From Monocercomonoides exilis PA203 (taxonomy: Eukaryota; Protista; Preaxostyla): 64,000 nt of DNA. The notes below the pieces were generated by a model. That model searched no databases and had not been told where the DNA came from. It worked only from the letters and a program-made list of their open reading frames with translations. Below, piece by piece: positions 989 through 39,500 of the stretch. A program made the translations under genes and the position numbers. Location: NCBI GenBank assembly GCA_001643675.2, contig LSRY02000039.1:186001-250000 (forward strand), given 5' to 3'. Position 1 is the stretch's first letter; each line of letters begins with the position of its first letter.

Positions 989-1618
989 ATGGAATCAACT
1001 GTGGAAGTTTTAAGACCAATACAAACACGATGCTCGTGCAGAAGAGTTTAAACAATGCAATATATTTATATTAGTAATATAATAATATTTTTGTCTTTTT
1101 AGTACGACCCAAAGCCTGTTCATCGAGAATTGCTTGAGGCTGTTCTTGAATCAGGAAGAAGGGCACCGTCTGGTAAAAACTTGCAACCTTGGCATTTTTA
1201 TGCTGTTGTGAATTCTGAGAAAAACAAGGAGATTGGTAGAAAAATCCAGCCAATTCTCGAAGAAAAAGTTCCACAGTTGAAAGGAAAAGCTGAACATATC
1301 GGCGTTTCAAACACGTTGTTTTATGATTCACCAGTTGTAATTTATATTACTGTTAAGAAAGATGGACTTTCAACAAAGTACATAGATTTGGGAATTGCAA
1401 TCGAAAATATGATGCTTCAAGCAGAAGCGCTTGGCTTATGCACACTTCCAGCAGCTATGCCCCAATGGTTTGGCTCAGAAATTATTACAAAAGAACTTGG
1501 CATTCCAGATTCGGAAGAATTTGTTATATCACTTTCATTGGGTTATCAACACCCTTCATTTGAAAAGAAACCTACTCAACGTGAACCTTTGGAAAAGGTC
1601 GTCACTTTTATTGAATAA
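989..1618 (+). CDS. Nitroreductase family flavoprotein (FMN-dependent), 2 exons: 989-1045 and 1103-1618
   Basis: Splicing the GT..AG intron 1046-1102 gives MESTVEVLRPIQTRCSCRRYDPKPV...RRAPSGKNLQPWHF...DLGIAIENMMLQAEALGLCT...LSLGY. These match the R-x-S-x-R-x-Y, APS..N.QPW and D.G.A..N..L.A...GLG motifs of the nitroreductase family. Confidence 0.93.
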
Positions 1619-2142
1619 ACCAAAGAAATACTTGAGTCTTATTTTATGAGTTATTTTTATAACGAATTGATGTTTTTTAATTTTGCGTTTTTTTTGATCT
1701 TAATGATATGAGAATATTTTTCATCCAAGCTTTCGGAATTGTTGGATAAAATATTCGCAAATAATGTTATTGAATGTGATATTAAAGACTTTCAGAGAAT
1801 ATTTTTCTTTTTTCTTACAAATAAAAATAAAAAGATAAAACATGTTTTCCAGAACTCGTTAAAGAAATTTTTTTTCCTGAAAGAAAATAAAAAATTTAAA
1901 AAATATCAATCTACACATGGAAATATCTCAATAAAAAAGACCAGTTGATGAAAAATAACAAACAAACAAAAAAAAAAAAAAATCATTCATTTTCAAAAAG
2001 TAACATCATCTTTTTCAGAAATAACTCAAAGTCCAAACACAAACATTCCATTTTCACTTTACACAGATAAAAGATGTTTTAGTGATTTCACAAATAATCT
2101 TTTGATGCATTTATTTTCATTCAATGCAACACTATTCTTTCT

Positions 2143-3539
2143 TCACCGATTCTTTTTTCTTGCTTCTTTGGGGACGGCAACTGAGATCTGTTGAGCATCA
2201 AAATCAATCGGATCTTCAAGACGATTCTGATAGGCGCTATCATTTTTCATCGAAGACGCATCTTCAGCTGACCCGTCAAAAGAGAAATCAACTCTGCTTG
2301 GCTGGTCATCCAGAAGCCTTATTTCATCTTCCGAAGTGCTTCGCTCTGTTGCTATCGTCCCGCTTTCTTTTCTCTGCGCTCCATGTTTCTTGTGATTGTG
2401 GCTTTCTCTTTTCTTTCTCTCCTTTTCCCTTTGCCCCATTTTTGTCTTTTGAGGAAGCGAAGAATGAGAAGGAGACAGCGAGATCGAGCCAAGTGCAATG
2501 CGTTGCATTGGATACATTCGCTGTGATTGGCTTTGAGAAGGAATTACAGATTTTGCACTGAAAAGACCAAATATAATCATAAACACCAGAGAAGGAACAA
2601 CTTCGACAAGGGAGTATTTCAGAGTCCAAACAAAAAAGTATGAAAAACTATTTTAAACAGATAAAAAAGAAGAAGCAACAAGAAAAGAAAATTGTTATTG
2701 CTTAAGTTTAATTAATATCATAAAATTTCAAACCAATGATCACTGAGACAACGCTCAAACATTATTCTGACCCCATCAATCGTGAAGTCATCATTGCAAA
2801 TGGATAAAATGGAGTATATAAATTGCACGAAGAAGATTGCTCCCAAAACAAATGTTGATATGGTTAACACCCAGAGCTTCCATTTAAACATCGATAGAAT
2901 TCCTGGGTTTAAAGAAATGCGAAACATTGATATCCCTTCAATTATCATGAGAATGCTAACGCCAATATAAAGCACTGAGAAAATTGCGTCAGATGCAATT
3001 TCGAATGATCGATTATCTTCGTTATTACCGTCATTGCTCCTCTTAAAAAAAAAAATGAAGTTAAAATTTTTTCTTATACAAAAAAAATGTTAAAATAGTC
3101 TACAAACTGAATCAATAATATTAAGTACAACGCTGCTAATGATGTCTATTGCGAACACAATAGATCCAATTAACGAGAAGAAAATTCGTCGATTTTTTGT
3201 TTTGAATAGTGGTAAAGAGAAAGAGATTCCAATCCAAACTGCAAATAAAAACCAAGGGAGAATCATCAAATAAGTCGGGAATGTCGAACAACTCAAAGAA
3301 AACGATAAGTATGAAAACGGAAAAGGAACAAAAAATATCATGCATCGATAAAGGAACGAAACAGATAAAAGAATCAAGATAATTTTCTTAAGTCGGTTTA
3401 CGTGCAATTTAGACGATTTAAATTCCATCACGGTTTGATATACAGAAAATAATAAGCAAAAAAAGAAAAATATTGCAAGTATTTTAAGAGGAAGGCTTCC
3501 ATTTCCATAAATTACTTTAACAAATTTGAAATAATTCAT
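2143..3539 (-). CDS. Multipass (about 7 TM) membrane protein, THH1/TOM1/TOM3-like; 3 exons (3539-3108, 3041-2734, 2647-2143), about 414 aa
   Basis: GT..AG introns join three hydrophobic ORFs in frame (1245 nt in total). The last helix YSLVEVVPSLVFMIIF resembles the conserved Y..LVE..PS motif of THH1/TOM1/GPR137-type proteins, followed by a charged cytosolic tail. Confidence 0.7.
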
Positions 3540-3842
3540 TTAATTTAAAAAATAAAACGAATACGTACCAGGACAATCGAACATTATGTCATCTTGAAAA
3601 AGACGCATAATGACGGTGATTAATGCGTTGAAATAGCTGGTTTTGTGAAATGCAAAAAATAAAAATGGGTAAAAAATGAGAAACATCAACTACCTCTAAT
3701 AATTTCACCATAAAAAATTTGTATTCTTTTCAAATGAAAAATAGAATAAAATAAATGCAAAAGATCATTTAACAACAATAATTTTCAATAACAACTACAA
3801 AAATTAATTCCTCTAAATCAGAACATTCATTTTGTTGTTTCT

Positions 3843-6800
3843 CTACAACGTGCGACTGGAATTCGCAGAAATGGGTGTTCGAATAGCGGTGCTTGAGCTA
3901 GAAGAGCTGGTACCTCTTCGCTCTGAAGTTAAAGGTGCATAAGGTGTCCTGGCTGAAGAACCAGAAGCCGTGCTTTGTCGAGTGAGAAATGAAGAAGAAG
4001 AAGAAGAAGAAGAAGAAGAAGAAGATGATGATGATGATGTTAATGACGATGATAATGCAGTCGCGTATTGACTCGTACCCGAAGACGACAAAACTGCTGA
4101 GGGTGTTTTGCTTATAGCCCTTTCGAGTGTCTGCGCCAACTCCATCTCAGCCTCTGCCCTGAGTCCCATCATCTCCATCCTCGCCTTCTCTGATGCCCTC
4201 CACTGCAGCCTCTCTCCATTCAGCCTCTCCTTCGCCAGCTCAGCCTCTTTCCTCGCTGCTGCCTCTGCCGAACGCGCACACACAACGTCTGCCTCTGCTG
4301 CTGCTATGCGCTCGCTCGCTGAGCGCAGCTCTTTCCGCATCGACTGCACCGCCTGCTTCAGCTCTTCTGCCTCTCTCTTCTTCTCTGCCAGCACACTCTC
4401 CAGCTCGTCCCGCTCAGATTTCAGCGCTTCTTTCTCTCTCATCCGCACCAGACACTCATTCTCTTTCTCTCTTCTCTTGTTTCTCTCTCGCTCTTTTTCT
4501 CTTTCTTTCTCTGCTTTCTCCCTTTCCAACTGCACCACTGCATCCTGCTTCTCTGCTGCTATATTTGCTGTCTCTTCAATCTCCTTCTTCAGCCTTTCTC
4601 CTTCCTCCACCGCAGCCTTCAGCCCTCTCTGCGCTTCCCTCAGCTCTCTTTCATTCGCCCTCAGCTTCTCCCGCACGGCTTCCAGTTCTTCTTCCAGCGC
4701 TTCGGCCTCTTTCTCTTTGATCTGCAGCGTTTCTTCGCTTTCTCTCGCCTTCTCCTCCAGCTCATTCACTTTGCTTTCTGTTTCCATCGAAATCTGCCTC
4801 AGCTTTTCTGTCTCTTCTGAAAGAGTGGCAATCGTCTCCTTCTCTGCACAGTGCAGCCGAAGAGAGAAGGAAGACAGCAGAGAACACACTGGATCTCTTA
4901 AATGACTCAAGGGAAGAGCAGAGGAAGAAAGAGAAGAAGAAGCAGAAGAAGCAGAAGAAGCAGAAGAAGAGGAAAAGCTGGCTATATTCTGCTCATTCTC
5001 CTCTCGTGTTGGCAAAGGCGGGAGAACACATTCAGTTCTGCTGTTGATCAGCGCCACAAACAGCGGAGACACCTCAAACGGGAAGAAAGCTCTGATTCCA
5101 TCGTCAAAACGAACAACTTGGCATTTCTCTTCCTCAAATGCGCTGTCACACACACGCAGAACAGAGAAGGGGTCAGAAGCGTCTGCCAATGAAAGGTCTC
5201 TACATCCACTGCCTGGTTTGGTTTCATAGACAGATTTGTATTTATTGATAGAAGAACTTTCTTCTTGTTCTTCTCCTTCTGCTGGCTTTTCTTGCCTTGT
5301 TTTCTTATTATTGATATTCGATCTTCTTTTGTTCAGCTGCTCATTGGTCGAAGGAGGAGAAGAAGAAGAAAGAGGAGAAATAAACAGAGGAAGAGCAACA
5401 GATTGCAAAGAGGAAGAAGAAGATGATGATGATGAAGGTGAATTCAGCAAATCAGCATTTGAAGAGTATTTTGGTGTTCGAGTAACACTTGAGGAAGGAG
5501 AAAGCCCGCGAAATGAAGAAGAAGAAGAAGAAGAAGAAGAAGAAGAAGAAGAAGAAGAAGGAGAAGCCAATGAAGAACTGTTCAAAGAAGATCGATAAGA
5601 AGAAGGTTGAATTGCGTTTCCATACACACGAGTGGAAGATGCAAACAGCTTGTGGATTCTGTTTGAGGCGATGACTGAAATAACAGCGACTCGGAAGCGG
5701 CGGAGCCAGATTTGAGACATATTTGAGGAGAAGATGGAAGAAGAAGAAGAAGAAGAGGAGGAGGAGGAAGAAGAAGATGATGATGCGTTCAATGATAAGC
5801 TAGCAGAAGAGGAGAAATTGGATGAATTGTTAGGCGAAGTGAATGAAGAAGAAGAATTCGAACGGATGCGGTTGACTTGCGCAGAGCTATTCAAATAGGT
5901 AGATTGAGGCGAAAGAGAAGAACGAGAGGAAGAAGAAGAAGAAGGAAGCGGAGTTGAAAGTGGATAATCATTCCTGTCAGATACAAATGAGCTTCTCTTG
6001 TTTTTGGAGGCAGTGCGCAACGTCTGCTCGCTGTTTAACTCATATTTTGATCGTTTACTCTGCTCTGAAAAGGCAAAAGGCGCATTTTCTGTGTTAATCT
6101 GCTGCTTTTGAAGAGAACCGGACAGCTCATTCTGCCTCGTTCCATTCAGATCCTCGCTTATCTGTGTGGCATTCACCACTTCCCTCTGAATCGCTAAGCA
6201 ATGCGCTTTCCCCTCTTCAAACCAGCTGTTCAGCATCTTCTTCTGCGCCGTCACATCTCTCAGCCTCACCCGCATCGCCTGCTCAATCCTTGCCATCATT
6301 CTGTTTGCCTCCTTCTCCTGTGACAGCGACGCATCCAGCGACTCCATGCTCTTCTTCATCTGCACATTCTCGTCTTCTCTTTCAGATAAGCTCCGCCTCA
6401 CTCCAAACAGCTCTGCCTCCAGCTGCTCAATCTCGTCCTTCAGCTTGTTCGTCTCGATTTCACTCAGCCTCTTCGTCTTCTCCTCCTTCGCACTGCTCTC
6501 TCTCTTTACTCTTTCTCTTTCTCTTTCTCCTTCATTTTTTATTCTCTCCACATCCTCTTCGTTTCTCGTTCTTTCCTCTTCCAACTGAAGCTGTGCGTTC
6601 TTCAGCTGCATCAGAACATCGCTGTTTGCCTGGCTCAGCTGTTGAATCTCGCTTTTCTGCCTTTTGTTGTCTGAGAGCAGTCGTTTCACATTGTTTTGTA
6701 GAGCTTCCTTCAAATTGGGCCAAGAAGATAAATCACTCACTGACACTTCTTCTTCTTCTTCTTCTTCTTCTTCTATTTCGTCCTCTTCCTCTTCATCTCC

Positions 6801-9631
6801 TTCTCCTTCTCTTCCTCCTTCTGTTTCGCTTCCCTCTTCGTTCACAGTATTTTCTCCGCTTCTTTCCTCTTCATCATCATCCTCTTCTCCTTTCTCATCT
6901 TCATCTGCATTCCTTTTCCCTTTCCCTTTCCCTTTCCCTTCTTTGCTTCTCTTTCTCATTTTCATTCTTCTGCTTTCCTTCTTCTCTGTTGGCTGCAACG
7001 CAAAGATCGTGTTCAACACACTCTTTACAGCCCTCTCTCTTTCTCTCAGCTCCTGTATCGCCATCTCCTTCTGCTGCTCCTCCTCTTCTGCTCTGTCTTT
7101 CTCTTCTTCTCTCTCCTTCTCCACTGCCTCCAGCTCATTCCGCAGCCGCTCCACTTCTCTTTCGCTCGCCTCGCACTGGTTCTTCGCTGCAGACAGCTCC
7201 GACTCAGTTTTCGCCTTCTCCTTCTGCTCATTCACGACTTTGCTCTTGTTCTGCCTGGCTGCTTCTCTTGCCTCGCTCAGCCGGTTCAGAACAAGTGTGA
7301 GCTTCTCTGCAAGCGAGCTGGCACTCACAGAAAGAGTTGGGTTGTCGATGGAAGGAGGAGGGGTGAGCGGAGAGAAGGAAGAGGAGAAGCGATAAGGAGA
7401 AGATGGAGAGGAGAAGGCAGATGAAGAGGAAGAAGCAGAAGATGAAGAAGAGGGAGAAGAAGAAGCGAATGAAGACAAAGTCTGAGAAACAGCTCGTGGG
7501 GTGTCTGTTGGATAGCGCCGGAGTGGAGTTGAGGTGGAGGAAGACGAAAGAGCAGCATCGAGAATGGGCTGATTGGATGGAAGAGGAATGTAATCACTGT
7601 CATTAGAAGAAGGATCAGAAGAGTCAGATGAAGAAAAGTTAGAAGATGAAGCAGAAGAGGAGGAGGAAGAAGAAGTAGATGGAAAAGGAGACGAATAAGC
7701 GCCAGGGGTATTTGACACATTAAACAACGGTATAGAACCAGGAGACGAGGCAGGAGTGGCATAATTCACCGACAAAGGAGAATTGTGCTTGTCAAACGAA
7801 GGAAGAGTCCCACCGTCCAGCACAACTCCTGCGATTCTCCGCATCCACCCATGCACTGCACACAGCTGCTCCACAACCGCCGCCAGCTCCTCGTCTTTCT
7901 TCCTTTCCCGCTCTTTCCCTTTCTCCTTCTCCTCTTCCAGCCGCCTGATCTTCTCTGCCCCTCGCTTCAGGTCTTCTTTGTATTGCCCCATCTTCTTCTC
8001 CTTCTCCACAGCTGCTGCACCATACAGCAGCTCTTCCCGTTCTGCCTGCAGATCTTCAATTTTCCTCTGTGAATCAACTAATTTCGCATTGACCTCGTTC
8101 AGTTTCTGTCCCAGTGCATTCGCCTCTTCCTCTTTCACTTGAAGATCAACTGCTGTCGCCTTCCATTTGTTGAGCGATTTTTCCAAGTTTTCCGTTTTTT
8201 CTCTTTCTGTTTCTAATTCATCGTGCAATCTTGCTTCTTCAGCTTCAAACTGCTCCTTCATTGACACCTGCTCTTTCTTCTGTTCTTCGATCTTTTCCGC
8301 TTTCTTCTCGTTTTCTTCAATCAGCTGCTCTTTCTCCTCTTCCACTCTGTTCTTCTCTTCATTCAGATTGTCAATCTCTGCCATCATCTGCCTCTTCTCC
8401 TCTTCCCACTCTTCCCTCTCTCTTTCTAACTGTTCTCTGATCCCCCTCTCTTTCTCCAGCTCTTCTTTCAGCTCAGCAGAAATCCGGCCTTCCTCCTTTG
8501 CTTCGACAGAGGCAGTCACTGCTTCGTCTCTCCAACGCTCCGTCTCCTTTTCTTGTGTATGCAAGCGAACATATGCAGTCTATTGAAATATTCACATATT
8601 TAAATATTTTAATGTCAATTATTAAAATGAATAATAAGATGATATTTACTCCAATAATGAATGATTAAATATTACAAAGAGCACACCGTTAGCTCATCTT
8701 GCACTCTTTTCAGATTCCTCTCTCTTGTATCTGCATCCGTTTCTAAAGCTTTTATCCTTGCATCTTGTTCCAATGAAATATGGTTCCAATCTCCTTCCCG
8801 CTCCAATTCTTCATCCTGGAGTCGATTAATCTGCTCTTTCATTGTCTTTTCTTTGGCTTCCATAATTCTGAGACTGGCTTTGGCTTCTTCAAGAGCACTT
8901 GAGCTTTCCTTTGATCTTTGCTCACTTTCTCTTAATTGTTCTTCAACTGAATCCAAAGTTGCTAAAAGCTCTTCTTGCTTTTTCTCGAGAAACACCACTC
9001 TTCCTTCAAGTTCGCTAATTTCCTGATCACGCCTCTCAATTTCTTGTGACAAACGCTTCACCTGCATTAATTCATAAAAAATTAGCAATGAAAATTCGAT
9101 AATCTGAGCAAACTGGCTCTTTCATTGATCTCACAAATTGTATGCTTCCTTCTTCGAGCTTTGCTGTTTGCGATCTAATTTGTTCTTCGTTCATTGTTAG
9201 TATTTCATCTTTCTGATTTTCAAAAATAAAAAAATGAAAACTCAATGTTAAGCTAAAAAAATGACCTTTGGAGAAAGAGCTCTATTTCTTTTTGCTATTT
9301 CAAGAAGTGGAGTGCTCTGAGGAACTTTTTTCGAACTATTAATCAAAAACAACAATAAATCCAAGATTTAATTGGCTTCTCTGAAGTTGAACACACGTCG
9401 ATGATATATCAGATTTGTAGGGCGAGTATTTCGTTAATGGTGTTTTCAACATTTCTTCTGTTCTCTGTGGGGTTCGAAAACTTTGTTCATAGATGGAATT
9501 TGAAAGTGGCTGAGTCTCTTTTGAACTCAAAGATTTTCGTTGAACTTCCAATTCGAAAAATTTAAAGATATAAAAACAATAATACATTATAGCATACGTA
9601 TTGTTGACAATCTTTGCGGATGCTCCGTCAT
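3843..9631 (-). CDS. Large coiled-coil protein with a PACT-like (pericentrin/AKAP450, CCDC171-like) motif; about 6 exons
   Basis: ATG at 9631 (MTEHPQRLSTI), short exons linked by GT..AG introns, then exon ORFs 8672-9088 and 3843-8564. E/K/R-rich heptad segments, plus motifs RLRDVTAQKKML and RRFRVAVISVIASNRI. Confidence 0.8.
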
Positions 9632-28949: not shown

Positions 28950-29672
28950 AGATAGTGCGCACTTTGATATTTATATTTTCTATAAACTTAGTTTTTCTAT
29001 TGTGAAATTTTTTATAAATTTGTTCTATACTTTTTGTTTCTTGCTTATTTTTAATTATAATTAGATCTTTAAAGGATCTAAAGTTCTGATTGCTTTTTAA
29101 TTTGTAATGTATCAGTATCTTTTTCTTTTTTATTTTATGAAAAATTTATATTTTGCACTGAAACGTTACAAAAAAAGTGAAAGAACTTGGAGTTGACATT
29201 GAGTATAAATTTTTTAGATGAATTTTTATTTAAAAAACATAAAAGATTATTTATAATGCTCAATGATTCGTTTTTTTGTATCTTTCAAAAAATGCACAAC
29301 ATTTCCCCTTCCAACTGAAATGTTATTATTGTTGCTGGAGATGCAAAAAAAGAAGTTAAAGACTAAAAACAAAAATGTAGAATATTTGGCAATCACGAAA
29401 ATTGAAGTTCCTGAAGGTTTTTGATAATTCGAAAATTGCTTAAAGTTAACATTTGAAAGGAAGTGTAACTCACAACAATTTATGAACATGCATTTTCACA
29501 GGTGTTAGAAATAATGCTGTGAAATAATATGAATTGAAAAAATTGCCAAATTGTGAGGTTCAGCATTGAGAAAACTGAATGAAGATAAGCTTCCTTTTGT
29601 GGCTTTTTGCAATAATTAAGAACCTATTTCATTAACGTAGAAATAAATTCAATATTTCTCCAGAATCACAAT

Positions 29673-31110
29673 TTAAAAGAAGGACCCTTCAAGCTGAGTC
29701 AAATTGTATATGTCGCTTCCTCCTTTCATAAGGAAGCTCCTTTTAGATAGAATGATATCCTCAAACCCGTTCTCTTCTAACATATCTTTGAAATCATTGA
29801 ATATTCTTTTTGCATCTTTCTCCTCTGCTCTTAAATTTTCCATCAAATGGTGAGAAAAATTGTCCAGAATAATTAAGGCAGCGTCAGCTATCTCGTTGCT
29901 TGAAATATCGCTCTGCAAAAAGGAGAACGTGCATTCAACAAAATTGTGCTTCCATAATATTTTCAGATTTTCCCACAGACCGTTTGAAGAAATTTGCAAA
30001 AATATATTCGAACAAAGCGCCTCAATGCACCCGCATCTGTTCGAATAGCGCATGCATTCATTTATAAGAAAATCCAATAAATTAATACCCTGCTTTGAAT
30101 TAATAAGTAAATCCTCTAATTTGGTAAGTTCTCCAAAGAGGTTGCACCAATTGCTTATCAAATATACTTGCTTTTTTTTATTGCGCATGTTCAATTGATA
30201 AAAAGAATGAAGTAATTCGTTAAGCTCCATTTTCGCCACTTTAAAAAATTGGATTTTGCCTAAATACTCTGCTGCATTTGCATGACAAACGTTCAGTAAC
30301 GTAATCATCACTTTCCATAATTCATAATAAACAACATGTGACATTTGATAGCGCTCAATGTAATTGCATGCTAAATCTTCAAAACTGCTTCGAATGTCAG
30401 ATTTAAAAAAAAAGGAACGATTCACATAATCTATAAAAGATGAACAAATTAAAATTGAATATAATTTTTAATAACCATAACTATACTGTCCATCGAAATA
30501 TGACTCAAAGCTAGAATAGAAATTTCCACTTCTTTTATGCTTTTTGCCTTTTCTTTATTTATGGCAACATTCAGAAGGACTGGAATTGTAACATTTAAAA
30601 CACTCTCCCGAAAGTGACAGTTTCTAAGACTAAGCAAATGCATGACTTCACTCATAAAAATCAAAGCTTCTTCATCAGAAGGGCTTTTATATGACAAGAT
30701 CTTTTTTTTTAATTGTTGATAAAAGCTTGATGAACAAAAATTTGTGCTCATCCAAATGCCAAGTTTCGCGCAATTAAATCCGAGCTCCCTCATAATTTTC
30801 AACGAATCGATATATCCTATCTGATTTTTTTCGATCATCAAATTTAATTCATTATAAGGCATCGTTTTAATCATTTTTATTAAATCATTCTCATTCATCA
30901 ATTCCATCATTTCAATGATTTCCCCAACCCGTATTTCATGAACATCCTTTTCAATCGTACGAAGTTGGTAAATTGCTTCTGAAAAAAATAAAAATAGAAA
31001 AATGGCAACAAAGAAAAAAGAAAAAATTTAGATTTCGACAAACTTTGGCACTTTTCAAAAAGAAATTCTGTTTGATTATTGCAAGATTCAACTATTTTCC
31101 CTTCATTCAT
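29673..31110 (-). CDS. ARM/HEAT-like helical hypothetical protein of a lineage-expanded family; 3 exons, about 440 aa
   Basis: ORFs 30907-31110, 30449-30910 and 29673-30425 join in phase through GT..AG introns (CAA A|GTTTGT..CAG|AA; GAC A|GTATAG..TAG|AT). The segment IPVLLNVAINKEKAKSIKEVEISILALSHI resembles a large oxymonad helical-repeat family. Confidence 0.7.
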
Positions 31111-31839
31111 AATTTATCTAAAACCATGAAATTTATAATTTTAAATTTTGATTTATGATCTTCCAAGAAACCAAAAGAAATCTTATTTGGGACAGAATTT
31201 TTTCTTTAAAGAAAAAATTAGATGAATTGCACTATTTTTCTGTTATTTTGAAATTATTGAAAAATTTTGAAATTTGTATATGATATTTTGAAATTATCAA
31301 GTAATTTTGAAATTCTCCAGAAAATTTGAAAAAATGGCAGTTTTTTTGAGTTTTACCAACAAATTTCAAGTAAAATATTTATTTTGGGAAGATCCGTATT
31401 TTTCTCCAAATAATTGTGGAAATCAAAAATAGCTGTTAATTAATCACAACTATTTTTAAAATATCAAATGAATAATTTTCAGAACATTCACCAACAAATT
31501 TTGCGAAATATATCATTTTTCGTAATTTTGTTTAAATCGTAAAGAAAAAATAAATATAATTCGACGTCAAAAAACGTTTATTGAAATGCTAATTGCAACA
31601 AATGATTGTCAATATTCAAAGCATTTCAAATTTTCAATTTGAAATGGTTTATAATTGCTGAGTTGCAAAAATTGACAGAATGCATCAAACATGAATAAAA
31701 AGAGCAAATAAAAATTCAAAAACATTTCAAATATTGATGTTTTGCACAATAATGAATATTTCATGGAGAATAAAAATGTTAACGTTGAAGAAAAAAATGT
31801 CAAAAAATGAAAGAAAAAACAAAGTTTCATTATGATCGT

Positions 31840-32841
31840 GTCAACTTTTCAATGAGACTTTTTTCTTAATTGGCACTTTTTTTGTTTTTGCTTGCAAAAT
31901 TCTGAGAAAAGAGAAGTAGTTTTCAGCATTTCAAAAATCCTTTTTAACAAGTTTTATTCTATTTATTTGCAGTTTGTTTTTATATTTTAACTTATTACAC
32001 ATTGAGAAATTTCGTTTTTTGTTAAATTTTAAAGGACTTTTTCTAGCCAACTGGGAATCGCTCAAGAAATTGGGGACATGTTTTATATTGCATTTGCTTC
32101 GAACTATTAATCTTTTAAATCTTTTTTTTGACAAACACTTTTTTCTTGATTTATTCGCATTTCAAATTTTCATCAACATGATTATATTAAACTGTTTATT
32201 TCTTTATTAATATAATGAAATGAAAAAAATAAAAATATGATATGAATAACAAATTCTTTTATAATGAAGTGTTAAAGATAAATTGAAAATGAGAATGTTT
32301 TATTTTTTCAACAGACAAATAGCGCTTGCTTGAAATGATCAATGACCAAGTTTTAGAAACAAAGTTAAGTTCTTGAAAAATAGATAAAATTAATGTTTTG
32401 TATTTACAACACTTCATTATAAAAGAATTTGTTATTCATATCATATTTTTATTTTTTTCATTTCATTATATTAATAAAGAAATAAACAGTTTAATATAAT
32501 CATGTTGATGAAAATTTGAAATGCGAATAAATCAAGAAAAAAGTGTTTGTCAAAAAAAAGATTTAAAAGATTAATAGTTCGAAGCAAATGCAATATAAAA
32601 CATGTCCCCAATTTCTTGAGCGATTCCCAGTTGGCTAGAAAAAGTCCTTTAAAATTTAACAAAAAACGAAATTTCTCAATGTGTAATAAGTTAAAATATA
32701 AAAACAAACTGCAAATAAATAGAATAAAACTTGTTAAAAAGGATTTTTGAAATGCTGAAAACTACTTCTCTTTTCTCAGAATTTTGCAAGCAAAAACAAA
32801 AAAAGTGCCAATTAAGGAAAAAGTCCCATTAAAAAGCTGAC
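31840..32841. repeat. Long inverted repeat / fold-back element A: arms 31840-32273 and 32408-32841 (434 bp), 134-bp spacer
   Basis: Identical mirror ORFs in the track (31931-32134 - equals 32547-32750 +; 31974-32210 + equals 32471-32707 -). Arm ends were checked by eye, and the only mismatches seen are 4 transitions in the outer 25 bp. Confidence 0.95.
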
Positions 32842-32860
32842 CCTCCATTTATTGGAAATA

Positions 32861-33920
32861 GGGTGGTTTTTTTATCCGGACATTTTTTTTATCCGGACAA
32901 AAATTTTAAATTTAAATATCTCAACAAATATTCAATATTAATTTCCAGCAATTTGCACAGTTGTATGTTAGCATATGTGACATCGATTCTTATACAAATT
33001 TTTAATAGCAGAGTGGTATTTTTTTTGAAATAAATAATTTTTATTTTTGAAAATCCGACTTTTGATGAATTTTTCTATTTTTATAAAACGATTCGGTTCA
33101 TCTTTTATATACACAACTTATTTTTTCCATGATATAAACAATTCTGGTTATTTTTTATTTTCGGCAATTTGCTCGTTTGGACTGAATGGAAATTTGTCAT
33201 TTTTGAAAAATCATTGTCAATGGGACAACTTAAAAAATAATTTTCATTAAATGAAGGAGCATCTAACAGAAACCAACACTTGCATTAATTAATATAATAG
33301 TTATATAAAATTACCACAAAGTGATAATTAAAAATGATTCAGAAGGTTTTTTATAAGCATCATTTGTTTTCATAATTGATGATTTTTAATATTCAATTTC
33401 ATTGAAATTCGAATAATATTTATTTTTTGGAATCTTCACTGAATCATTTTTAATTATCACTTTGTGGTAATTTTATATAACTATTATATTAATTAATGCA
33501 AGTGTTGGTTTCTGTTAGATGCTCCTTCATTTAATGAAAATTATTTTTTAAGTTGTCCCATTGACAATGATTTTTCAAAAATGACAAATTTCCATTCAGT
33601 CCAAACGAGCAAATTGCCGAAAATAAAAAATAACCAGAATTGTTTATATCATGGAAAAAATAAGTTGTGTATATAAAAGATGAACCGAATCGTTTTATAA
33701 AAATAGAAAAATTCATCAAAAGTCGGATTTTCAAAAATAAAAATTATTTATTTCAAAAAAAATACCACTCTGCTATTAAAAATTTGTATAAGAATCGATG
33801 TCACATATGCTAACATACAACTGTGCAAATTGCTGGAAATTAATATTGAATATTTGTTGAGATATTTAAATTTAAAATTTTTGTCCGGATAAAAAAAATG
33901 TCCGGATAAAAAAACCACCC
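32861..33920. mobile_element. Fold-back element B, a putative non-autonomous DNA transposon (MITE-like) with ~482-bp TIRs, 96-bp spacer and TA flanks
   Basis: Structure is TA|GGGTGG...CCACCC|TA. Arms 32861-33342 and 33439-33920 appear perfectly complementary, with mirror ORFs 33047-33250 + and 33531-33734 -. Subterminal tandem motif TTTTTTATCCGGACA occurs twice at each end. No transposase ORF. Confidence 0.75.
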
Positions 33921-34250
33921 TAGTCTTTTTTTTTTTTTTTGTTGGAAAATAATTGTTTCGTGAAGAATTTGATATAATTTGAAAAGATTTCGTAATAAAG
34001 AAAAGATAGATTCAAACAAGAAAGATTGTTTCATGTAAATAAATCAAAAACATTTCCAACAAAAAATTAACTTTATCCAAAAGTACATTGACTTTAGGAA
34101 AAGACAGTATCTTTCCGAAAAATATTCAATGTTTCTCCAAAAGTGCGAGTATTATTCCTTTTAAACTGCAATTTTCGAATTAAAATTATTTCAATGTGCT
34201 TTAACAAAATAAAATTGGAAAAAAAATGAAATGCAGGAAGTGTTATTTTT

Positions 34251-34865
34251 TTAAACAACAGCAGCAATATGACGCTTTTTATGTTTCGGCTTTCTGTTCC
34301 TTTTGATACGTCTCTAAAAATGGATTTGTAAGTTTATTAAATTAAAGTTAAAAAAACACTTGACCTTCCATTTTTATATTTTACAAACCTGTATTTTTTT
34401 TCGAATGTCAGGACGCCTGCTTAGCTCAATTTTCTTTTTGCGTGATTCACCTAAAACGGAACATGCTCAACAAACTGATAAATCACAAAATGATAAGAAC
34501 AAACTCATTTTCTTTTTAGGTTTTGATTTTTGTTGTTCATTTTTTGTTTCTTTTTCTTTTGGGGTTTCAATTCCTTTCTGTTTTCTTATTTCTTCAGCTT
34601 TCTTTGCATCAGCAGCTTTTCTTCTATTTTGAAGTCTCAGATCAGCCATAAGCAGCTTGTATCTTTCCTCGTAGTCAGCTAAAACTTTCTAATATCATCA
34701 CCATAATTTTAAATGTTAAAAATACAATAAAACAATAACAATTCTCGATCTAAAAAACTTATATAAGAAGTTTCACACGGGACGTTCTTTTTCAACTGCG
34801 ATTCTATGGTTGGCTCTCTCTCTTTTGTTGTGGACATTGCCTTTACACCCTAATCTCTTTCCCAT
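34251..34865 (-). CDS. Small Lys/Arg-rich hypothetical protein, 4 exons, about 130 aa
   Basis: MGKRLGCKGNVHNKRERANHRIAVEKERP | KVLADYEERYKLLMADLRLQNRRK...KKKMS | ESRKKKIELSRRPDIRKKIQ | RRIKRNRKPKHKKRHIAAVV*. Three phase-compatible GT..AG introns. Confidence 0.75.
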
Positions 34866-36071
34866 TAATAGAATACTTTTTTTATGGGCTCATTGAACCA
34901 TAAAATTTTCATTAATTGTTTGAAACATTGTTTTTTTATTTTAAGAATTGTTTCCACACAGTTTTACACATGAATGAGCTTTGAAAGGTGCAAGATAGAT
35001 GATGAAATGAATCTGTTGAGAAATTAAAATCAGTGAATTCAATTTTTTTGTTGAATATAAATATTTAAATATTTCTTTCAGATTAAATTCAAATTTCAAA
35101 AATGATCAATGATTTCAATAAATCATCTATATTTTATCAGAAGAAAGTTGCAAGTTCAAAGCAATGAATTGAAAAGACGAGAAAAGAGCAAGATTAAATT
35201 ATCGAGAAGCATTTTGTGAAAAAAGCTATCAAACCAAAAATATTTACCCTTCTGTTAATAGCCTTTCAAAAGGAAATTTCAATGTTGATCAATATCTCAA
35301 ACGGAATCCAAATTAAACGTTCAACATAACTTTATATTCCATTCCAAAAGAAGCGATTCATATGGACATATGACATTATTCACAGATTATGCATCATGAA
35401 CAAGACGTTGGGAACAATGTAATATGAACGACGAAATGAAAAATGATGAATATATGCAAATAAAGGATGATAAAGGATCAATTATGTCTAAAAGCAGCTG
35501 TGACGAGAAGAGTGTAGAAATGAAAAAGAAACACAAGCTCTGTTGATGCAAACATAGTTTTGTACTTCATTGCGCAGAAGGAATATTTCAAGAAATCTTA
35601 TTAAAGTTGTAATCAATTATTTTCAAGAAACATTTTTACAAAAATGAAATACAATTATTATTTAGGAGAAAATCATTTTAACCAGAATAAAAAGTCTAGA
35701 CTCTGCACCAGGGTTACCATCACGAAAAAGCAAAAAACGCCATCCTTTTGTAATATTTCAAGGATATCAGACGCTTGTTAAAATTGGTCAGCTTGCATGC
35801 ACTTTACCTTTTCCAGTCATCAATCATAAACAAACAAAATTTCAATTAAATTAAAGTTCATAAATGCAAAAATAAAACAAAAGAATTGGACAAGAAGATA
35901 TATTATAATATAATAATGGAATATGAAAAAGAGATATACATGACAAATTGTTAATATCACGAGATAAAAGAAATTCGTTAAATTATGTTTTTTCAATAAA
36001 CTCAGGATGATCAACACCTATCAAATAAGGTAATTTTGAAAGTGATGTTTTAGAGTTCTTTTTTTCAACAA

Positions 36072-36142
36072 GCAGTAATGGTCTAGGGGTAGAATGCAAC
36101 GTTGCCATCGTTGCGACCCGGGTTCGAGTCCCGGTTACTGCA
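36072..36142 (+). tRNA. tRNA-Gly (anticodon GCC)
   Basis: Acceptor stem GCAGTAA/TTACTGC plus discriminator A, anticodon arm CAACG-TTGCCAT-CGTTG, T arm CCGGG-TTCGAGT-CCCGG, and a downstream T-run (Pol III terminator). Confidence 0.97.
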
Positions 36143-36582
36143 AGTTCTTTTTGTCAATTATTACTTTTTAATTGAAAAAAGAAAAAACAAATATTTTTAT
36201 ATTACGTTTTTTTGATAGAAAAATTTTTGTTTGAAAAAGAAATAATCGTGATCTTAAAGAAAGTAATTAAAAAATTTAAATAAGATTGAAATTGTTATGT
36301 TAGAATATTTAAATAAATTTTAAATTATCGAATTTGTTTGTTAAAAAATATTTTATCTTCTTTTAGTTGCTCGATGAACTTAAGCTTGTATTGCATTTTC
36401 ATTCATTCAGATTTATATCATATAAAAGTTTTTTTAACGAAAAAAATAGAAAAATTTATCTTTAAAAAAATATTCTTCGAAGCAAACTTCAAACACACAA
36501 AAAACTGAATGAGGCAAAGCAAACTTGTCGTTTAAATTGCAGTAGCTGAGATTCTAAGACCGTCCTTTTCCCATAAAAGTTG

Positions 36583-39500
36583 TCAAACACAAAGGCTAAC
36601 AGAACTTAGCTGCTCGGAATATTCTCCCTTTAAACAGAAGCTTCCTAATGTTCCAAGTTTAATTCTCATTCCTCCGCCTTCCGGACTCAACGCAGATGTC
36701 AAATCATCCAAAGAGCAGTTCACAATTGACAGATGCGTCTCAAGCTGAACAGACCCAAATGAAGGCTGCTCGTCATACTCACTCACATGAAGAGAAGTGA
36801 ATTCACAGTTCTTGAAGCTTATTTCAGATGGCTGAGATTCTTGATTGGCTGAAGAGGAATAATCATCTTTTGCATCTGGTGTTGAAGGAATCAGATCGAA
36901 AAGTGAACAAGTTGAAAATGACAAATGTGGAAAGCGGACTCCCTCGAATGAAGCTTGAGCTGTTTGTGAAATCACAAAAGGCGTAACATTAAATGCTGCT
37001 TTATCAGTATAACATTGAGAAAGCTGCACAACTCCACCCAAAACGCTGATCAAATGCACGCAACTTGAAACATCTTGCGATTCTGAAGAAGTGATAATGA
37101 AAGAGCACGATGAAAATTGGATGTTTCCTGTTTCTGTGGAAGAGGAAAACAACGAAGCACCTTCAGGCATCTCAATAACAAAAGCAGAAGGAATATGAAA
37201 ATCGATCGAAGAAAACGAAAGAACGGATGTAGATGAAACAACACTCCCAGATGCAAACTGAACATTGGTACTGATGTTAATCCCGCTGTTTTCTCTGTCA
37301 AATGACAGAACATTGACTGAGTTGAGCGAAATATCATTTTCGATCGAGCCATTCGATTTCACAGTGATCACACGAAGTGGCACGTCTGCACTGCTCTCTG
37401 CAAGTCGATTGACAGAATAGTCAAGCGATTGGAACTGAACAAAATTGCTCCCACAAAACACCTCGTTCTGCCCTGCTGGAGCCTCAACCAGAACAGATAC
37501 ACTCACAAAACCTTCCACAAAAATCATATGAACAAGCTCGACTTGGACATTTGCGCCATCATCAGTGAAAAAGGAGAGCTTTTGGTACTTTTTGATTGAC
37601 CTATTAAAAAATTAAAAATACCAATTTTTCAATTGCTCGAGCTTTATGTCCAAAAGGGTTACAAAAGATTTGCATCATCACCATCTGAAAGTTTTTTGCT
37701 TGAAGCTGTTCCATTCATCGAGCTTATAAAAGGAAGTTTCATTTGTTTCTGATCAACAATAATTGAAATTCACAGAACGGTTTTTACAGCAGATAGGTTT
37801 GAAAGAGCTTAACAAAAAAGAACATCTGAAGATGCTGATTTTAGAGGCAACATAAGAATAAAAATGAAAGAAATACTCCGAATTATTGCTCCTTGCATGA
37901 AATACGTCTGTCATAACAATTGTCAAACGAAGAAGCAACATCAACCGAGCAGTTTTAAAGAGAGAATTTCACGTTTGATGGAATGATATGTGCAATGTTA
38001 GAATTAAATAAAGAAGAAGACTTCTCAGAAATCTGTTGAATCTACAATCAATGATCGAAGCATTATAACAAGAAGAAATAATAAGAGAGAAAACGAAGAA
38101 GACGATATCTGATAATTATTTGCTGCGAACCTTTACGTAGAAAACAGAACAGATTCAATAGAAAACAGCTACACAAACAGAACTCAGCTGATAGTCTGAA
38201 CAACTTTTATGAAATCTAATTGAGAAATACTTTGAACAGAAGCCAATGATTGAAGGGGCTTAATTTAATTTTATTTATTTATTGATAATTAAATTGAACG
38301 ACACATGGCATTTTCAGTATTTCTGCATTTCTATTTGAAAGTTAAAAACTCAAATTTCGAAAAATCAACTTATTTTCATCGGTAGAAAAATTGCTTTCTT
38401 TGCAGCTTAATTTTCAATCGTTGCTTTGTTCACACATGAGCCTATTAATATCAGAGGCTTTATTGCAATCATCAGAGCAGCTGGCATATATATGTCTTCT
38501 TCACAAAGCATCAACATAAAAACGAAAAAGCATGCACGATTGTTTTGCATAGAAGGATTCCAACTCTACATCCCCATTTATCTACACAATAAGATGCAAT
38601 TATTATCTACTCGTTCGTTGTGTTTACTTTTTGAAATATCTCCTTTATCATTAATTATCAATCGTGAGCCAGTTATTGCGGAATACAAAGATGAAAAATC
38701 AAAGCTGTCAATTTCATAATTTCTATCTGTGGGTGCTATATGTATCTGGAAGCTCACTCGCTGCTGTGTTTCCAAAGAAGCGACAAGCTGAATACGTATT
38801 CTTGCAGATTTTGTACATGAAAATTGTATCACCTTTATCTTCTGAATGGCATCTTACAAATACTGAATTGCTTATACAAAGATTCCAACATTTATTTGCA
38901 TAGTGTCCATCGAAATATATTGCACCTCCCTGTAGCCCTTTTCATTCAATCCATTCTTCATTAGAAAATATTCCGTGCTGCTTTTCCATTATTATACGGT
39001 CAGTTCTGGATATGTGGAATTTTGAAGATTTTTCAGTTGATTGTGAATGTGAGCATTGAATTAAGTGGTTGAATGATGATTGATGATAAAAAGCAGTCGA
39101 GCTGGGCGACAGTCCGTGTACAACAGTTCAATAGAAAATGTCTACACATTGGAAAAATGTGTTGAGAAGAATAGAAGAATTATCAATGAATAAACTGTTA
39201 GTCATTTGAAGATTGTTAAAGCATTCTTCTTTTATTCTTTCATTCGAAAAAGTGCAACTCTCAACGAATTCAAAATCTCCGATGCCTCCGCAGGAAAACG
39301 AAGAAAAATTTGATGAATAAAAAACCAAAGAATTAAATGAAGAAAATAAAACTGATGACCTTCCAGTTCCTCATCAAAGCCACGCCAAACTGCAAACAGA
39401 GCGATTCCAATCCGCCTCGAAAACAACTGAAAAATTTTCTAAAAAGCATTTCCAACTTGACATGCAAGACGGATGGAAATTATTTACAGGCTTCAATTAA

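Follow-up and report, generated by a model that had tools for sequence, protein, structure and literature searches.

The pair of long palindromes in this stretch of Monocercomonoides exilis PA203 DNA (contig LSRY02000039.1; the whole stretch of 64,000 nucleotides is called the window) is explained, with high confidence, as two non-autonomous fold-back DNA transposons of the TA-targeting Tc1/mariner-pogo group, A and B, inserted side by side. Each has numerous relatives elsewhere in the genome, its own 2-bp target-site duplication and characteristic GGGT ends, and for B a longer relative encoding a pogo-type transposase was found. Together they represent new families of a known kind, namely long-armed, fold-back, non-autonomous pogo-type DNA transposons.

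The inverted-repeat search covered window positions 30500-35500. It confirmed the claim of an earlier note on this DNA that two near-perfect palindromes of about 1 kb lie next to each other, with 17 nt between the computed repeats. The geometry proposed there for B was reproduced exactly: two arms of 484 nt including the TA flanks (32859-33342 and 33439-33922), 100% complementary, with 96 nt between them. In the case of A, the palindrome stood and its dimensions had to be corrected, from 434-bp arms and a 134-bp loop to arms of 441 nt (31840-32280 and 32401-32841, 98% complementary) separated by 120 nt. The arms account for 88% of element A and 91% of element B, and a repeat search of both elements revealed no tandem families inside the arms except for two terminal 17-nt units. 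A has no coding capacity, its longest open reading frame (ORF) being at most 78 aa. After the boundaries of A and B were refined by alignment to other family copies, the following features were assigned:

31836..31837, no strand: left target-site duplication of A, TC; TC stands again just after the right end
31838..32843, no strand: fold-back A, 1006 bp; arms 31838-32280 and 32401-32843, loop 32281-32400
32844..32845, no strand: right target-site duplication of A, TC; compared with other A copies
32846..32858, no strand: host DNA of 13 nt separating the A and B insertions, read from the sequence
32859..32860, no strand: left target-site duplication of B, TA; TA is present on both sides in the sampled two-ended copies
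32861..33920, no strand: fold-back B, 1060 bp; arms 32861-33342 and 33439-33920 at 100%, loop 33343-33438
33921..33922, no strand: right target-site duplication of B, TA; compared with other B copies

The search of the genome assembly (82,301,135 bases in 101 contigs) demonstrated that neither element is confined to the window. The A arm matched at least 20 further loci at 80-94% identity and the B arm at least 30 at 81-94%; both counts are lower bounds, as each arm search scored the best ~40 candidates. The matches occurred almost always in plus/minus pairs spaced by about 1 kb, and full-length copies of ~1.0 kb were seen at other loci for both A and B. The terminal motifs were counted with a 28-nt A end (up to 3 mismatches) and a 21-nt B end (up to 2 mismatches), with the reversed patterns as controls. 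The A end occurred 197 times and the B end 154 times in the 82.3 Mb, and both controls gave 0. Most of the ends were paired about 1.0 kb apart, which corresponds to approximately 100 A elements and 77 B elements. The copies are spread over most contigs, often several per contig, in unrelated flanks. A and B are dispersed transposon families, not a unique structure. The exact A and B end motifs had 0 matches in the metagenome contigs.

The dispersal, the target-site duplications and the transposase-encoding relative of B bear out the suggestion of the earlier note that two fold-back families, similar to the small transposable elements with inverted repeats known as MITEs, met in a transposon-accumulating spot. 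A and B are non-coding and possess terminal repeats and target duplications, as MITEs do, but they are 1.0 kb long, number about 100 and 77 copies and are 5-20% diverged. They are MITE-like rather than typical MITEs.

To define the ends of A, 13 full-length copies were aligned together with their flanks, and the copy at C27 was added for the target-site counts (14 copies in total). The A element runs 3 bases beyond the computed arms on each side, and the family consensus ends GGGTCARC...GYTGACCC with TA in the flanks. The window copy has the ends GTGTCAAC...GCTGACCC, the left one standing beside TC. TA was present on both sides in 8 of the 14 copies, TT on both sides in one and TC on both sides in the window copy; the remainder had one side altered. 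For B the order was TA, GGGTGG...CCACCC, TA in every sampled copy with both ends intact, and its ends carry two tandem units of 16-17 nt containing ATCCGGACA.

The arms of A and B do not align with each other, so far in agreement with the earlier view that they have no obvious sequence in common. Their ends tell otherwise: 14 of the first 21 terminal bases are identical, the layout GGGT-N4-TTTTTA-N3-GGAC occurs in both, and in each a pair of direct subterminal motifs stands at a spacing of about 17 nt (AATGGGAC and AATTGGCAC in A, ATCCGGACA twice in B). Because the two families share these GGGT starts and this end layout as well as the type of target duplication (2 bp, mostly TA), the term 'unrelated' applied to them was overstated. 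Judged by their termini, A and B appear to belong to one kind of element despite the non-aligning arms. At two B copies, C58:2039392-2040398 and C91:412069-413132, the host flanks beside the TA form inverted repeats of their own (22 nt and 10 nt, respectively), a sign that the targets may have been palindromic AT-rich DNA or other fold-backs.

The source of B was found at C17:391012-394632. In this 3.6-kb element B-family arms of 434 nt (99% complementary) enclose 2.7 kb, and the interior contains a 503-aa ORF that matches the Pfam domain DDE_1 (PF03184, E = 1.1e-17). B aligned to positions 8-459 (93%) and 3060-3622 (91%) of the element, and the loop of B is the 80 nt just inside its right repeat. 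Since B aligns only to the two ends of the element, it equals the C17 element minus approximately 2.6 kb. These alignments show B to be an internal-deletion derivative of the 3.6-kb autonomous element, the lost interior having included the transposase gene. FDES, MDNHS and PCDS motifs, assigned by eye with pogo motifs as the guide, occur in the C17 transposase, and its final two aspartates are separated by 35 residues, an arrangement which we take to be the pogo pattern. At least six copies of the transposase gene with 90% identity or more and without an internal stop are present genome-wide, and more than 1000 candidate places for the family were noted in a first look at the genome.

B-type ends also bound larger classes, one of ~2.0 kb with at least 11 pairs, one of 3.07 kb and one of 4.8 kb, all listed from pairs of end motifs:

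C1:1240258-1242282, C5:1750192-1752228, C16:399687-401712 and at least 8 more: ~2.0-kb B-ended class with the ends GGGTGA and GGGTGG
C56:51822-54891: 3.07-kb B-ended class
C91:1061667-1066499 and C91:1518823-1523654: 4.8-kb B-ended class

Each element is little else than two long terminal inverted repeats (~440 bp in A, ~480 bp in B) with a loop of 96-120 bp between them. In the proposed mechanism a DDE_1 transposase of the pogo type, provided in trans, would recognize the GGGT... ends together with the two subterminal direct motifs and move the element by cut and paste. The excised element would reinsert at TA, occasionally at TC or TT, duplicating the 2 bp. A is presumably a second family with the same end architecture. 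The window copies would be independent insertions, 13 bp apart, beside an older repeat in an AT-rich, gene-poor stretch, and their near-perfect arms would be kept alike by arm-to-arm gene conversion, recent insertion alone being probably insufficient. We infer transposition activity, trans-mobilization and the conversion mechanism from sequence comparisons.

The likeness of the arms within copies exceeds the likeness between copies. In most copies the arms were 98-100% identical, and the nearest sampled other copy reached 90-95%. The B copy at C44 has 100% identical arms and its best other match in a genome-wide search was 90%; for the A copy at C31, also with 100% identical arms, the best others in such a search were 97% over 374 nt, and 94%. 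Without homogenization the divergence between arms should be equal to or greater than that between copies, because the duplication of the arm predates the split between copies. Differences from the family consensus were shared by both arms at 24 positions versus 4 on one arm only in the window copy of A, and at 25 versus 0 in that of B. Among the changes private to a single B copy, 135 were on both arms and 48 on one. In trees of separate arms, the two arms of one copy grouped as sisters in all 12 B copies analyzed and in 8 of the 13 A copies. Polishing of the assembly does not force arm identity, since decayed copies with arms only 67-89% identical are also present.

Two points tell against the homogenization. 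The 'nearest other copy' is the best of approximately 40 scored candidates, and a closer relative may be missed. A young cluster of A copies (C65, C14b and C10b) groups left arms with left arms, which implies that transposition itself copies both arms faithfully and that homogenization is not part of every transposition. We therefore infer that homogenization may be a separate, slower process, most simply gene conversion between inverted repeats. The paper on Galileo willistoni contains nothing on arm homogenization.

Perfect hairpins of 440-480 bp, if transcribed, are ideal Dicer substrates. The arm complementarity maintained via changes on both arms might hence mean that the pair, transposon-derived as it is, was kept as a source of hairpin RNA or small RNA, or because it serves the genes on either side as a regulatory or boundary element. 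However, the arms are conserved evenly over their length, and equally so in all copies irrespective of location, gene conversion would account for the paired changes without selection, and no Rfam family matches. Retention for such a role seems improbable.

Another candidate origin concerned A only. Long-spaced A ends were found in two places, at C27 and in a 2.4-kb pair at C14:463758-466171. The element at C27:599616-605616 has inverted arms of 898 nt, 100% identical, around ORFs for a gag-like protein, a reverse transcriptase (RT; PF00078) and a tyrosine recombinase (PF00589). Its arms are built of the A arm (the outer 440 nt), the A loop, a stub and 300 nt of the retroelement end. A could accordingly be viewed as a non-autonomous derivative of a DIRS-like (tyrosine-recombinase) retrotransposon, formed from its inverted terminal repeats. 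The other copies of the retroelement speak against it. Ten of them carry no A sequence, and their match ends within the A stub, some 20 nt beyond the A loop, at positions 1595-1601 of C27:598600-606700, where the element spans 1014-7017. The inner 300 nt of the C27 arm are elsewhere complete only at the 3' end of the retroelement, and the 5' end has an inverted piece of 73-87 nt. Furthermore, A has the 2-bp target duplications and GGGT ends, as B does. The DIRS-like origin of A was rejected as very improbable.

Because the other retroelement copies lack A sequence, C27 is explained by insertion of the retroelement into a copy of A. For the 898-nt arms the best reading is a later conversion, acting between the A arms and the short inverted ends of the retroelement, in which approximately 460 nt would have been copied across. 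Such growth of the arms resembles the recruitment of new terminal-repeat sequence by Galileo (PMC3573991). The DIRS-like family itself has at least 20 copies at 87-92% RT identity (e.g., C21:321178-322677, C91:965876-967375 and C80:644122-645618), and more diverged DIRS-like lineages are numerous; 86 RT matches were scored of 511 candidates.

As to the transposase of A, tblastn with the B-type protein on sampled loci detected degenerate pogo-type genes near A copies, at C33 (45% identity) and C22 (32% identity), without A ends. This genome has many diverged genes of the pogo type, one of which is probably the source, or else A is cross-mobilized.

Several observations weigh against the assignment of A and B to the pogo-type transposons. 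No autonomous or coding element with A-type ends was found among the genome arm matches and end motifs, inspected at spacings of 2-6 kb, and at C27, the one long structure with A ends, a DIRS-like retroelement occupies an A copy. The window copy of A is flanked by TC, not TA, and the dinucleotides on the two sides differ in some A copies (TA/AA, CA/TA). Pfam revealed no DNA-binding domain in the region of the B-type transposase at E up to 1, and under the same threshold neither the 113-aa upstream ORF nor the first 156 aa matched a helix-turn-helix of the CENP-B, psq or Tc5 type; such a domain may have diverged too far or be interrupted by an intron. Finally, among the matches listed, no B end, exact or with 1 mismatch, lies near any of the other five intact transposase genes.

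The fold-back at C27 is not the only one that lies within a larger palindrome in the assembly. A B copy at C10:965710-966778 lies at the exact center of a perfect palindrome of at least 4 kb (C10:964210-968278, at the assembly level). Its flanks, 1500 nt on each side, are 100% reverse-complementary, have 51% GC and contain a fragment of an ABC-transporter ATPase. With these two examples in mind we tentatively raise the possibility that the fold-backs are dynamic palindromes, the arms of which are continually homogenized by conversion, the same process being able to draw in neighboring DNA. If true, fold-back families would be natural seeds of inverted gene duplication, and the pair in the window two seeds not yet expanded.

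The surroundings of A and B were described in the earlier note as a gene-free AT-rich island. There is indeed no ORF of 100 aa or more within window positions 30911-36582, and the GC content around 31-34 kb is 23-24% versus 39% for the whole window. The island is not empty, though, as it holds a dispersed repeat, named D, and a tRNA gene:

31213..31836, no strand: copy of repeat D, ~620 bp; at least 40 copies genome-wide at 73-84% identity
36072..36142, plus strand: tRNA-Gly(GCC) gene, the nearest gene to the right of the island; ARAGORN, and Rfam RF00005 with 56.2 bits

The order in the window is repeat D, TC, A, TC, 13 nt, TA, B, TA. The copies of repeat D aligned up to 31836, next to the left end of A, no terminal inverted repeats were visible in D, and the right flank of the A/B pair gave no D-like matches. 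Repeat D is older than the A and B insertions, and the island is a pile-up of transposons. The tRNA gene was the sole match in the Rfam scan of 29000-37500.

B-family sequence within 600 bp was found at 3 of the 17 A loci examined (the window, C27 at a distance of 2 bp and C33 at 520 bp), against a rough random expectation of ~0.04 for such proximity in 82 Mb. A complete A beside a complete B was seen only in the window; the other two cases involve B fragments in another geometry. The A copy at C32 contains in its loop a third fold-back, about 410 bp long, with TA flanks, CCGGACA repeats, the ends CAGATATCGC and two ATACCGGACA motifs resembling those of B. The flanks of most copies are AT-rich, and some have 40-45% GC. 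The M. exilis genome paper describes repeat-dense regions with low coding density, coding-poor regions being richer in classified repeats (PMC8767320). Altogether, this supports the accumulation of TA-targeting elements in AT-rich intergenic DNA and no specific A-B relationship, because the three A-B neighborhoods differ in geometry.

The same data bear on the proposal of the earlier note that the pair is a functional chromosomal structure, here taken as the core of a centromere, an origin of replication or a programmed cruciform. The AT-richness, the lack of protein genes and the adjacency of two long, perfect palindromes would fit such a structure. Against it stand ~100 and ~77 dispersed copies on most contigs, often several on each, with unrelated flanks and their own target duplications, and the fact that among the loci examined only this one combines a complete A with a complete B. 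Scattered copies of the arms were the outcome which the note itself had set against the centromere and in favor of the MITE reading. The functional structure is extremely improbable, and this part of the note had to be abandoned.

Fold-back chimeric reads are a recognized artifact of Oxford Nanopore sequencing. An origin of the palindromes in such reads or in the assembly, which was built from nanopore data with Canu and polished with Pilon (PMC8767320) and in which the arms of B are 100% identical, is hardly conceivable, as dozens of copies combine the 1.0-kb architecture and a conserved, oriented loop with 5-20% divergence, TA duplications and different flanks, and an artifact would not yield an evolving family with decayed members.

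Among known systems, the architecture of A and B is closest to that of Tc4 of Caenorhabditis elegans, reportedly described by Yuan et al. in 1991, which is said to be a fold-back of the IS630/Tc1/mariner group with 774-bp arms and a 3-bp TNA duplication. In both cases the element is non-coding and consists nearly entirely of two long terminal inverted repeats, near-perfect, around a short loop; a less frequent, longer variant has the transposase gene between these repeats, and the broad transposase group is the same. A and B differ in the arm length (440-480 bp), the 2-bp TA duplication, the pogo-type DDE_1 match and the oxymonad host, and they have no sequence similarity to Tc4.

The pogo/Tigger-type transposons and their MITEs, such as Lemi1/Emigrant of Arabidopsis, likewise combine a DDE_1 transposase with TA duplication, and the ends, together with the subterminal repeated motifs to which the transposase binds, recur in their non-autonomous derivatives (PMC1636448). 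Typical pogo-derived MITEs are 80-600 bp long with short terminal repeats, whereas the M. exilis autonomous element and the derivatives have repeats of 434-484 bp. Another difference is that no CENP-B or psq type DNA-binding domain was found in the B-type transposase. With Foldback, Galileo and Tetris of Drosophila the elements share very long terminal inverted repeats and the prevalence of non-autonomous copies; the repeats of those elements grow by recruiting inverted internal sequence, as in the C27 copy, and their long repeats have been proposed to undergo recombination or conversion (PMC4079207, PMC3573991). Those elements belong, however, to the P or Mutator superfamilies and have 7-10-bp duplications and tandem sub-repeats in the arms, whereas A and B have 2-bp duplications and two terminal 17-nt units.

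Arm-to-arm gene conversion keeps the arms of human Y-chromosome palindromes and of plastid inverted repeats 98-100% identical. As in those cases, the arms of A and B stay alike while the whole sequence diverges from its relatives; unlike them, A and B are mobile, ~1 kb long and present in about 100 copies, and the process is deduced from comparison of sequences within one assembly.

Repeats make up 46% of the M. exilis PA203 assembly, and unclassified repeats account for 35% of the genome (PMC8767320). The genome paper has no occurrence of 'MITE', 'DIRS' or 'palindrom' (PMC8767320). The value of the present results for annotation lies in two fold-back families, a pogo-type autonomous relative and a DIRS-like family, all defined with ends and target sites. 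The pair itself is ordinary genome furniture, and a false lead, towards a centromere or origin, was removed. The more interesting thread is the homogenization of the arms and their occasional expansion into large palindromes. The co-evolution of the arms and the occasional growth of multi-kilobase palindromes may provide a natural setting in which to study hairpin-driven inverted duplication.

To the right of the pair, window positions 34247-34866 (620 bp) were 92% identical to C52:357944-358561, and the region of the tRNA-Gly gene (36058-36155) was 98-100% identical to C52:355404-355495 and C43:287912-288009. These matches suggest a small segmental duplication, which would include the tRNA-Gly gene.

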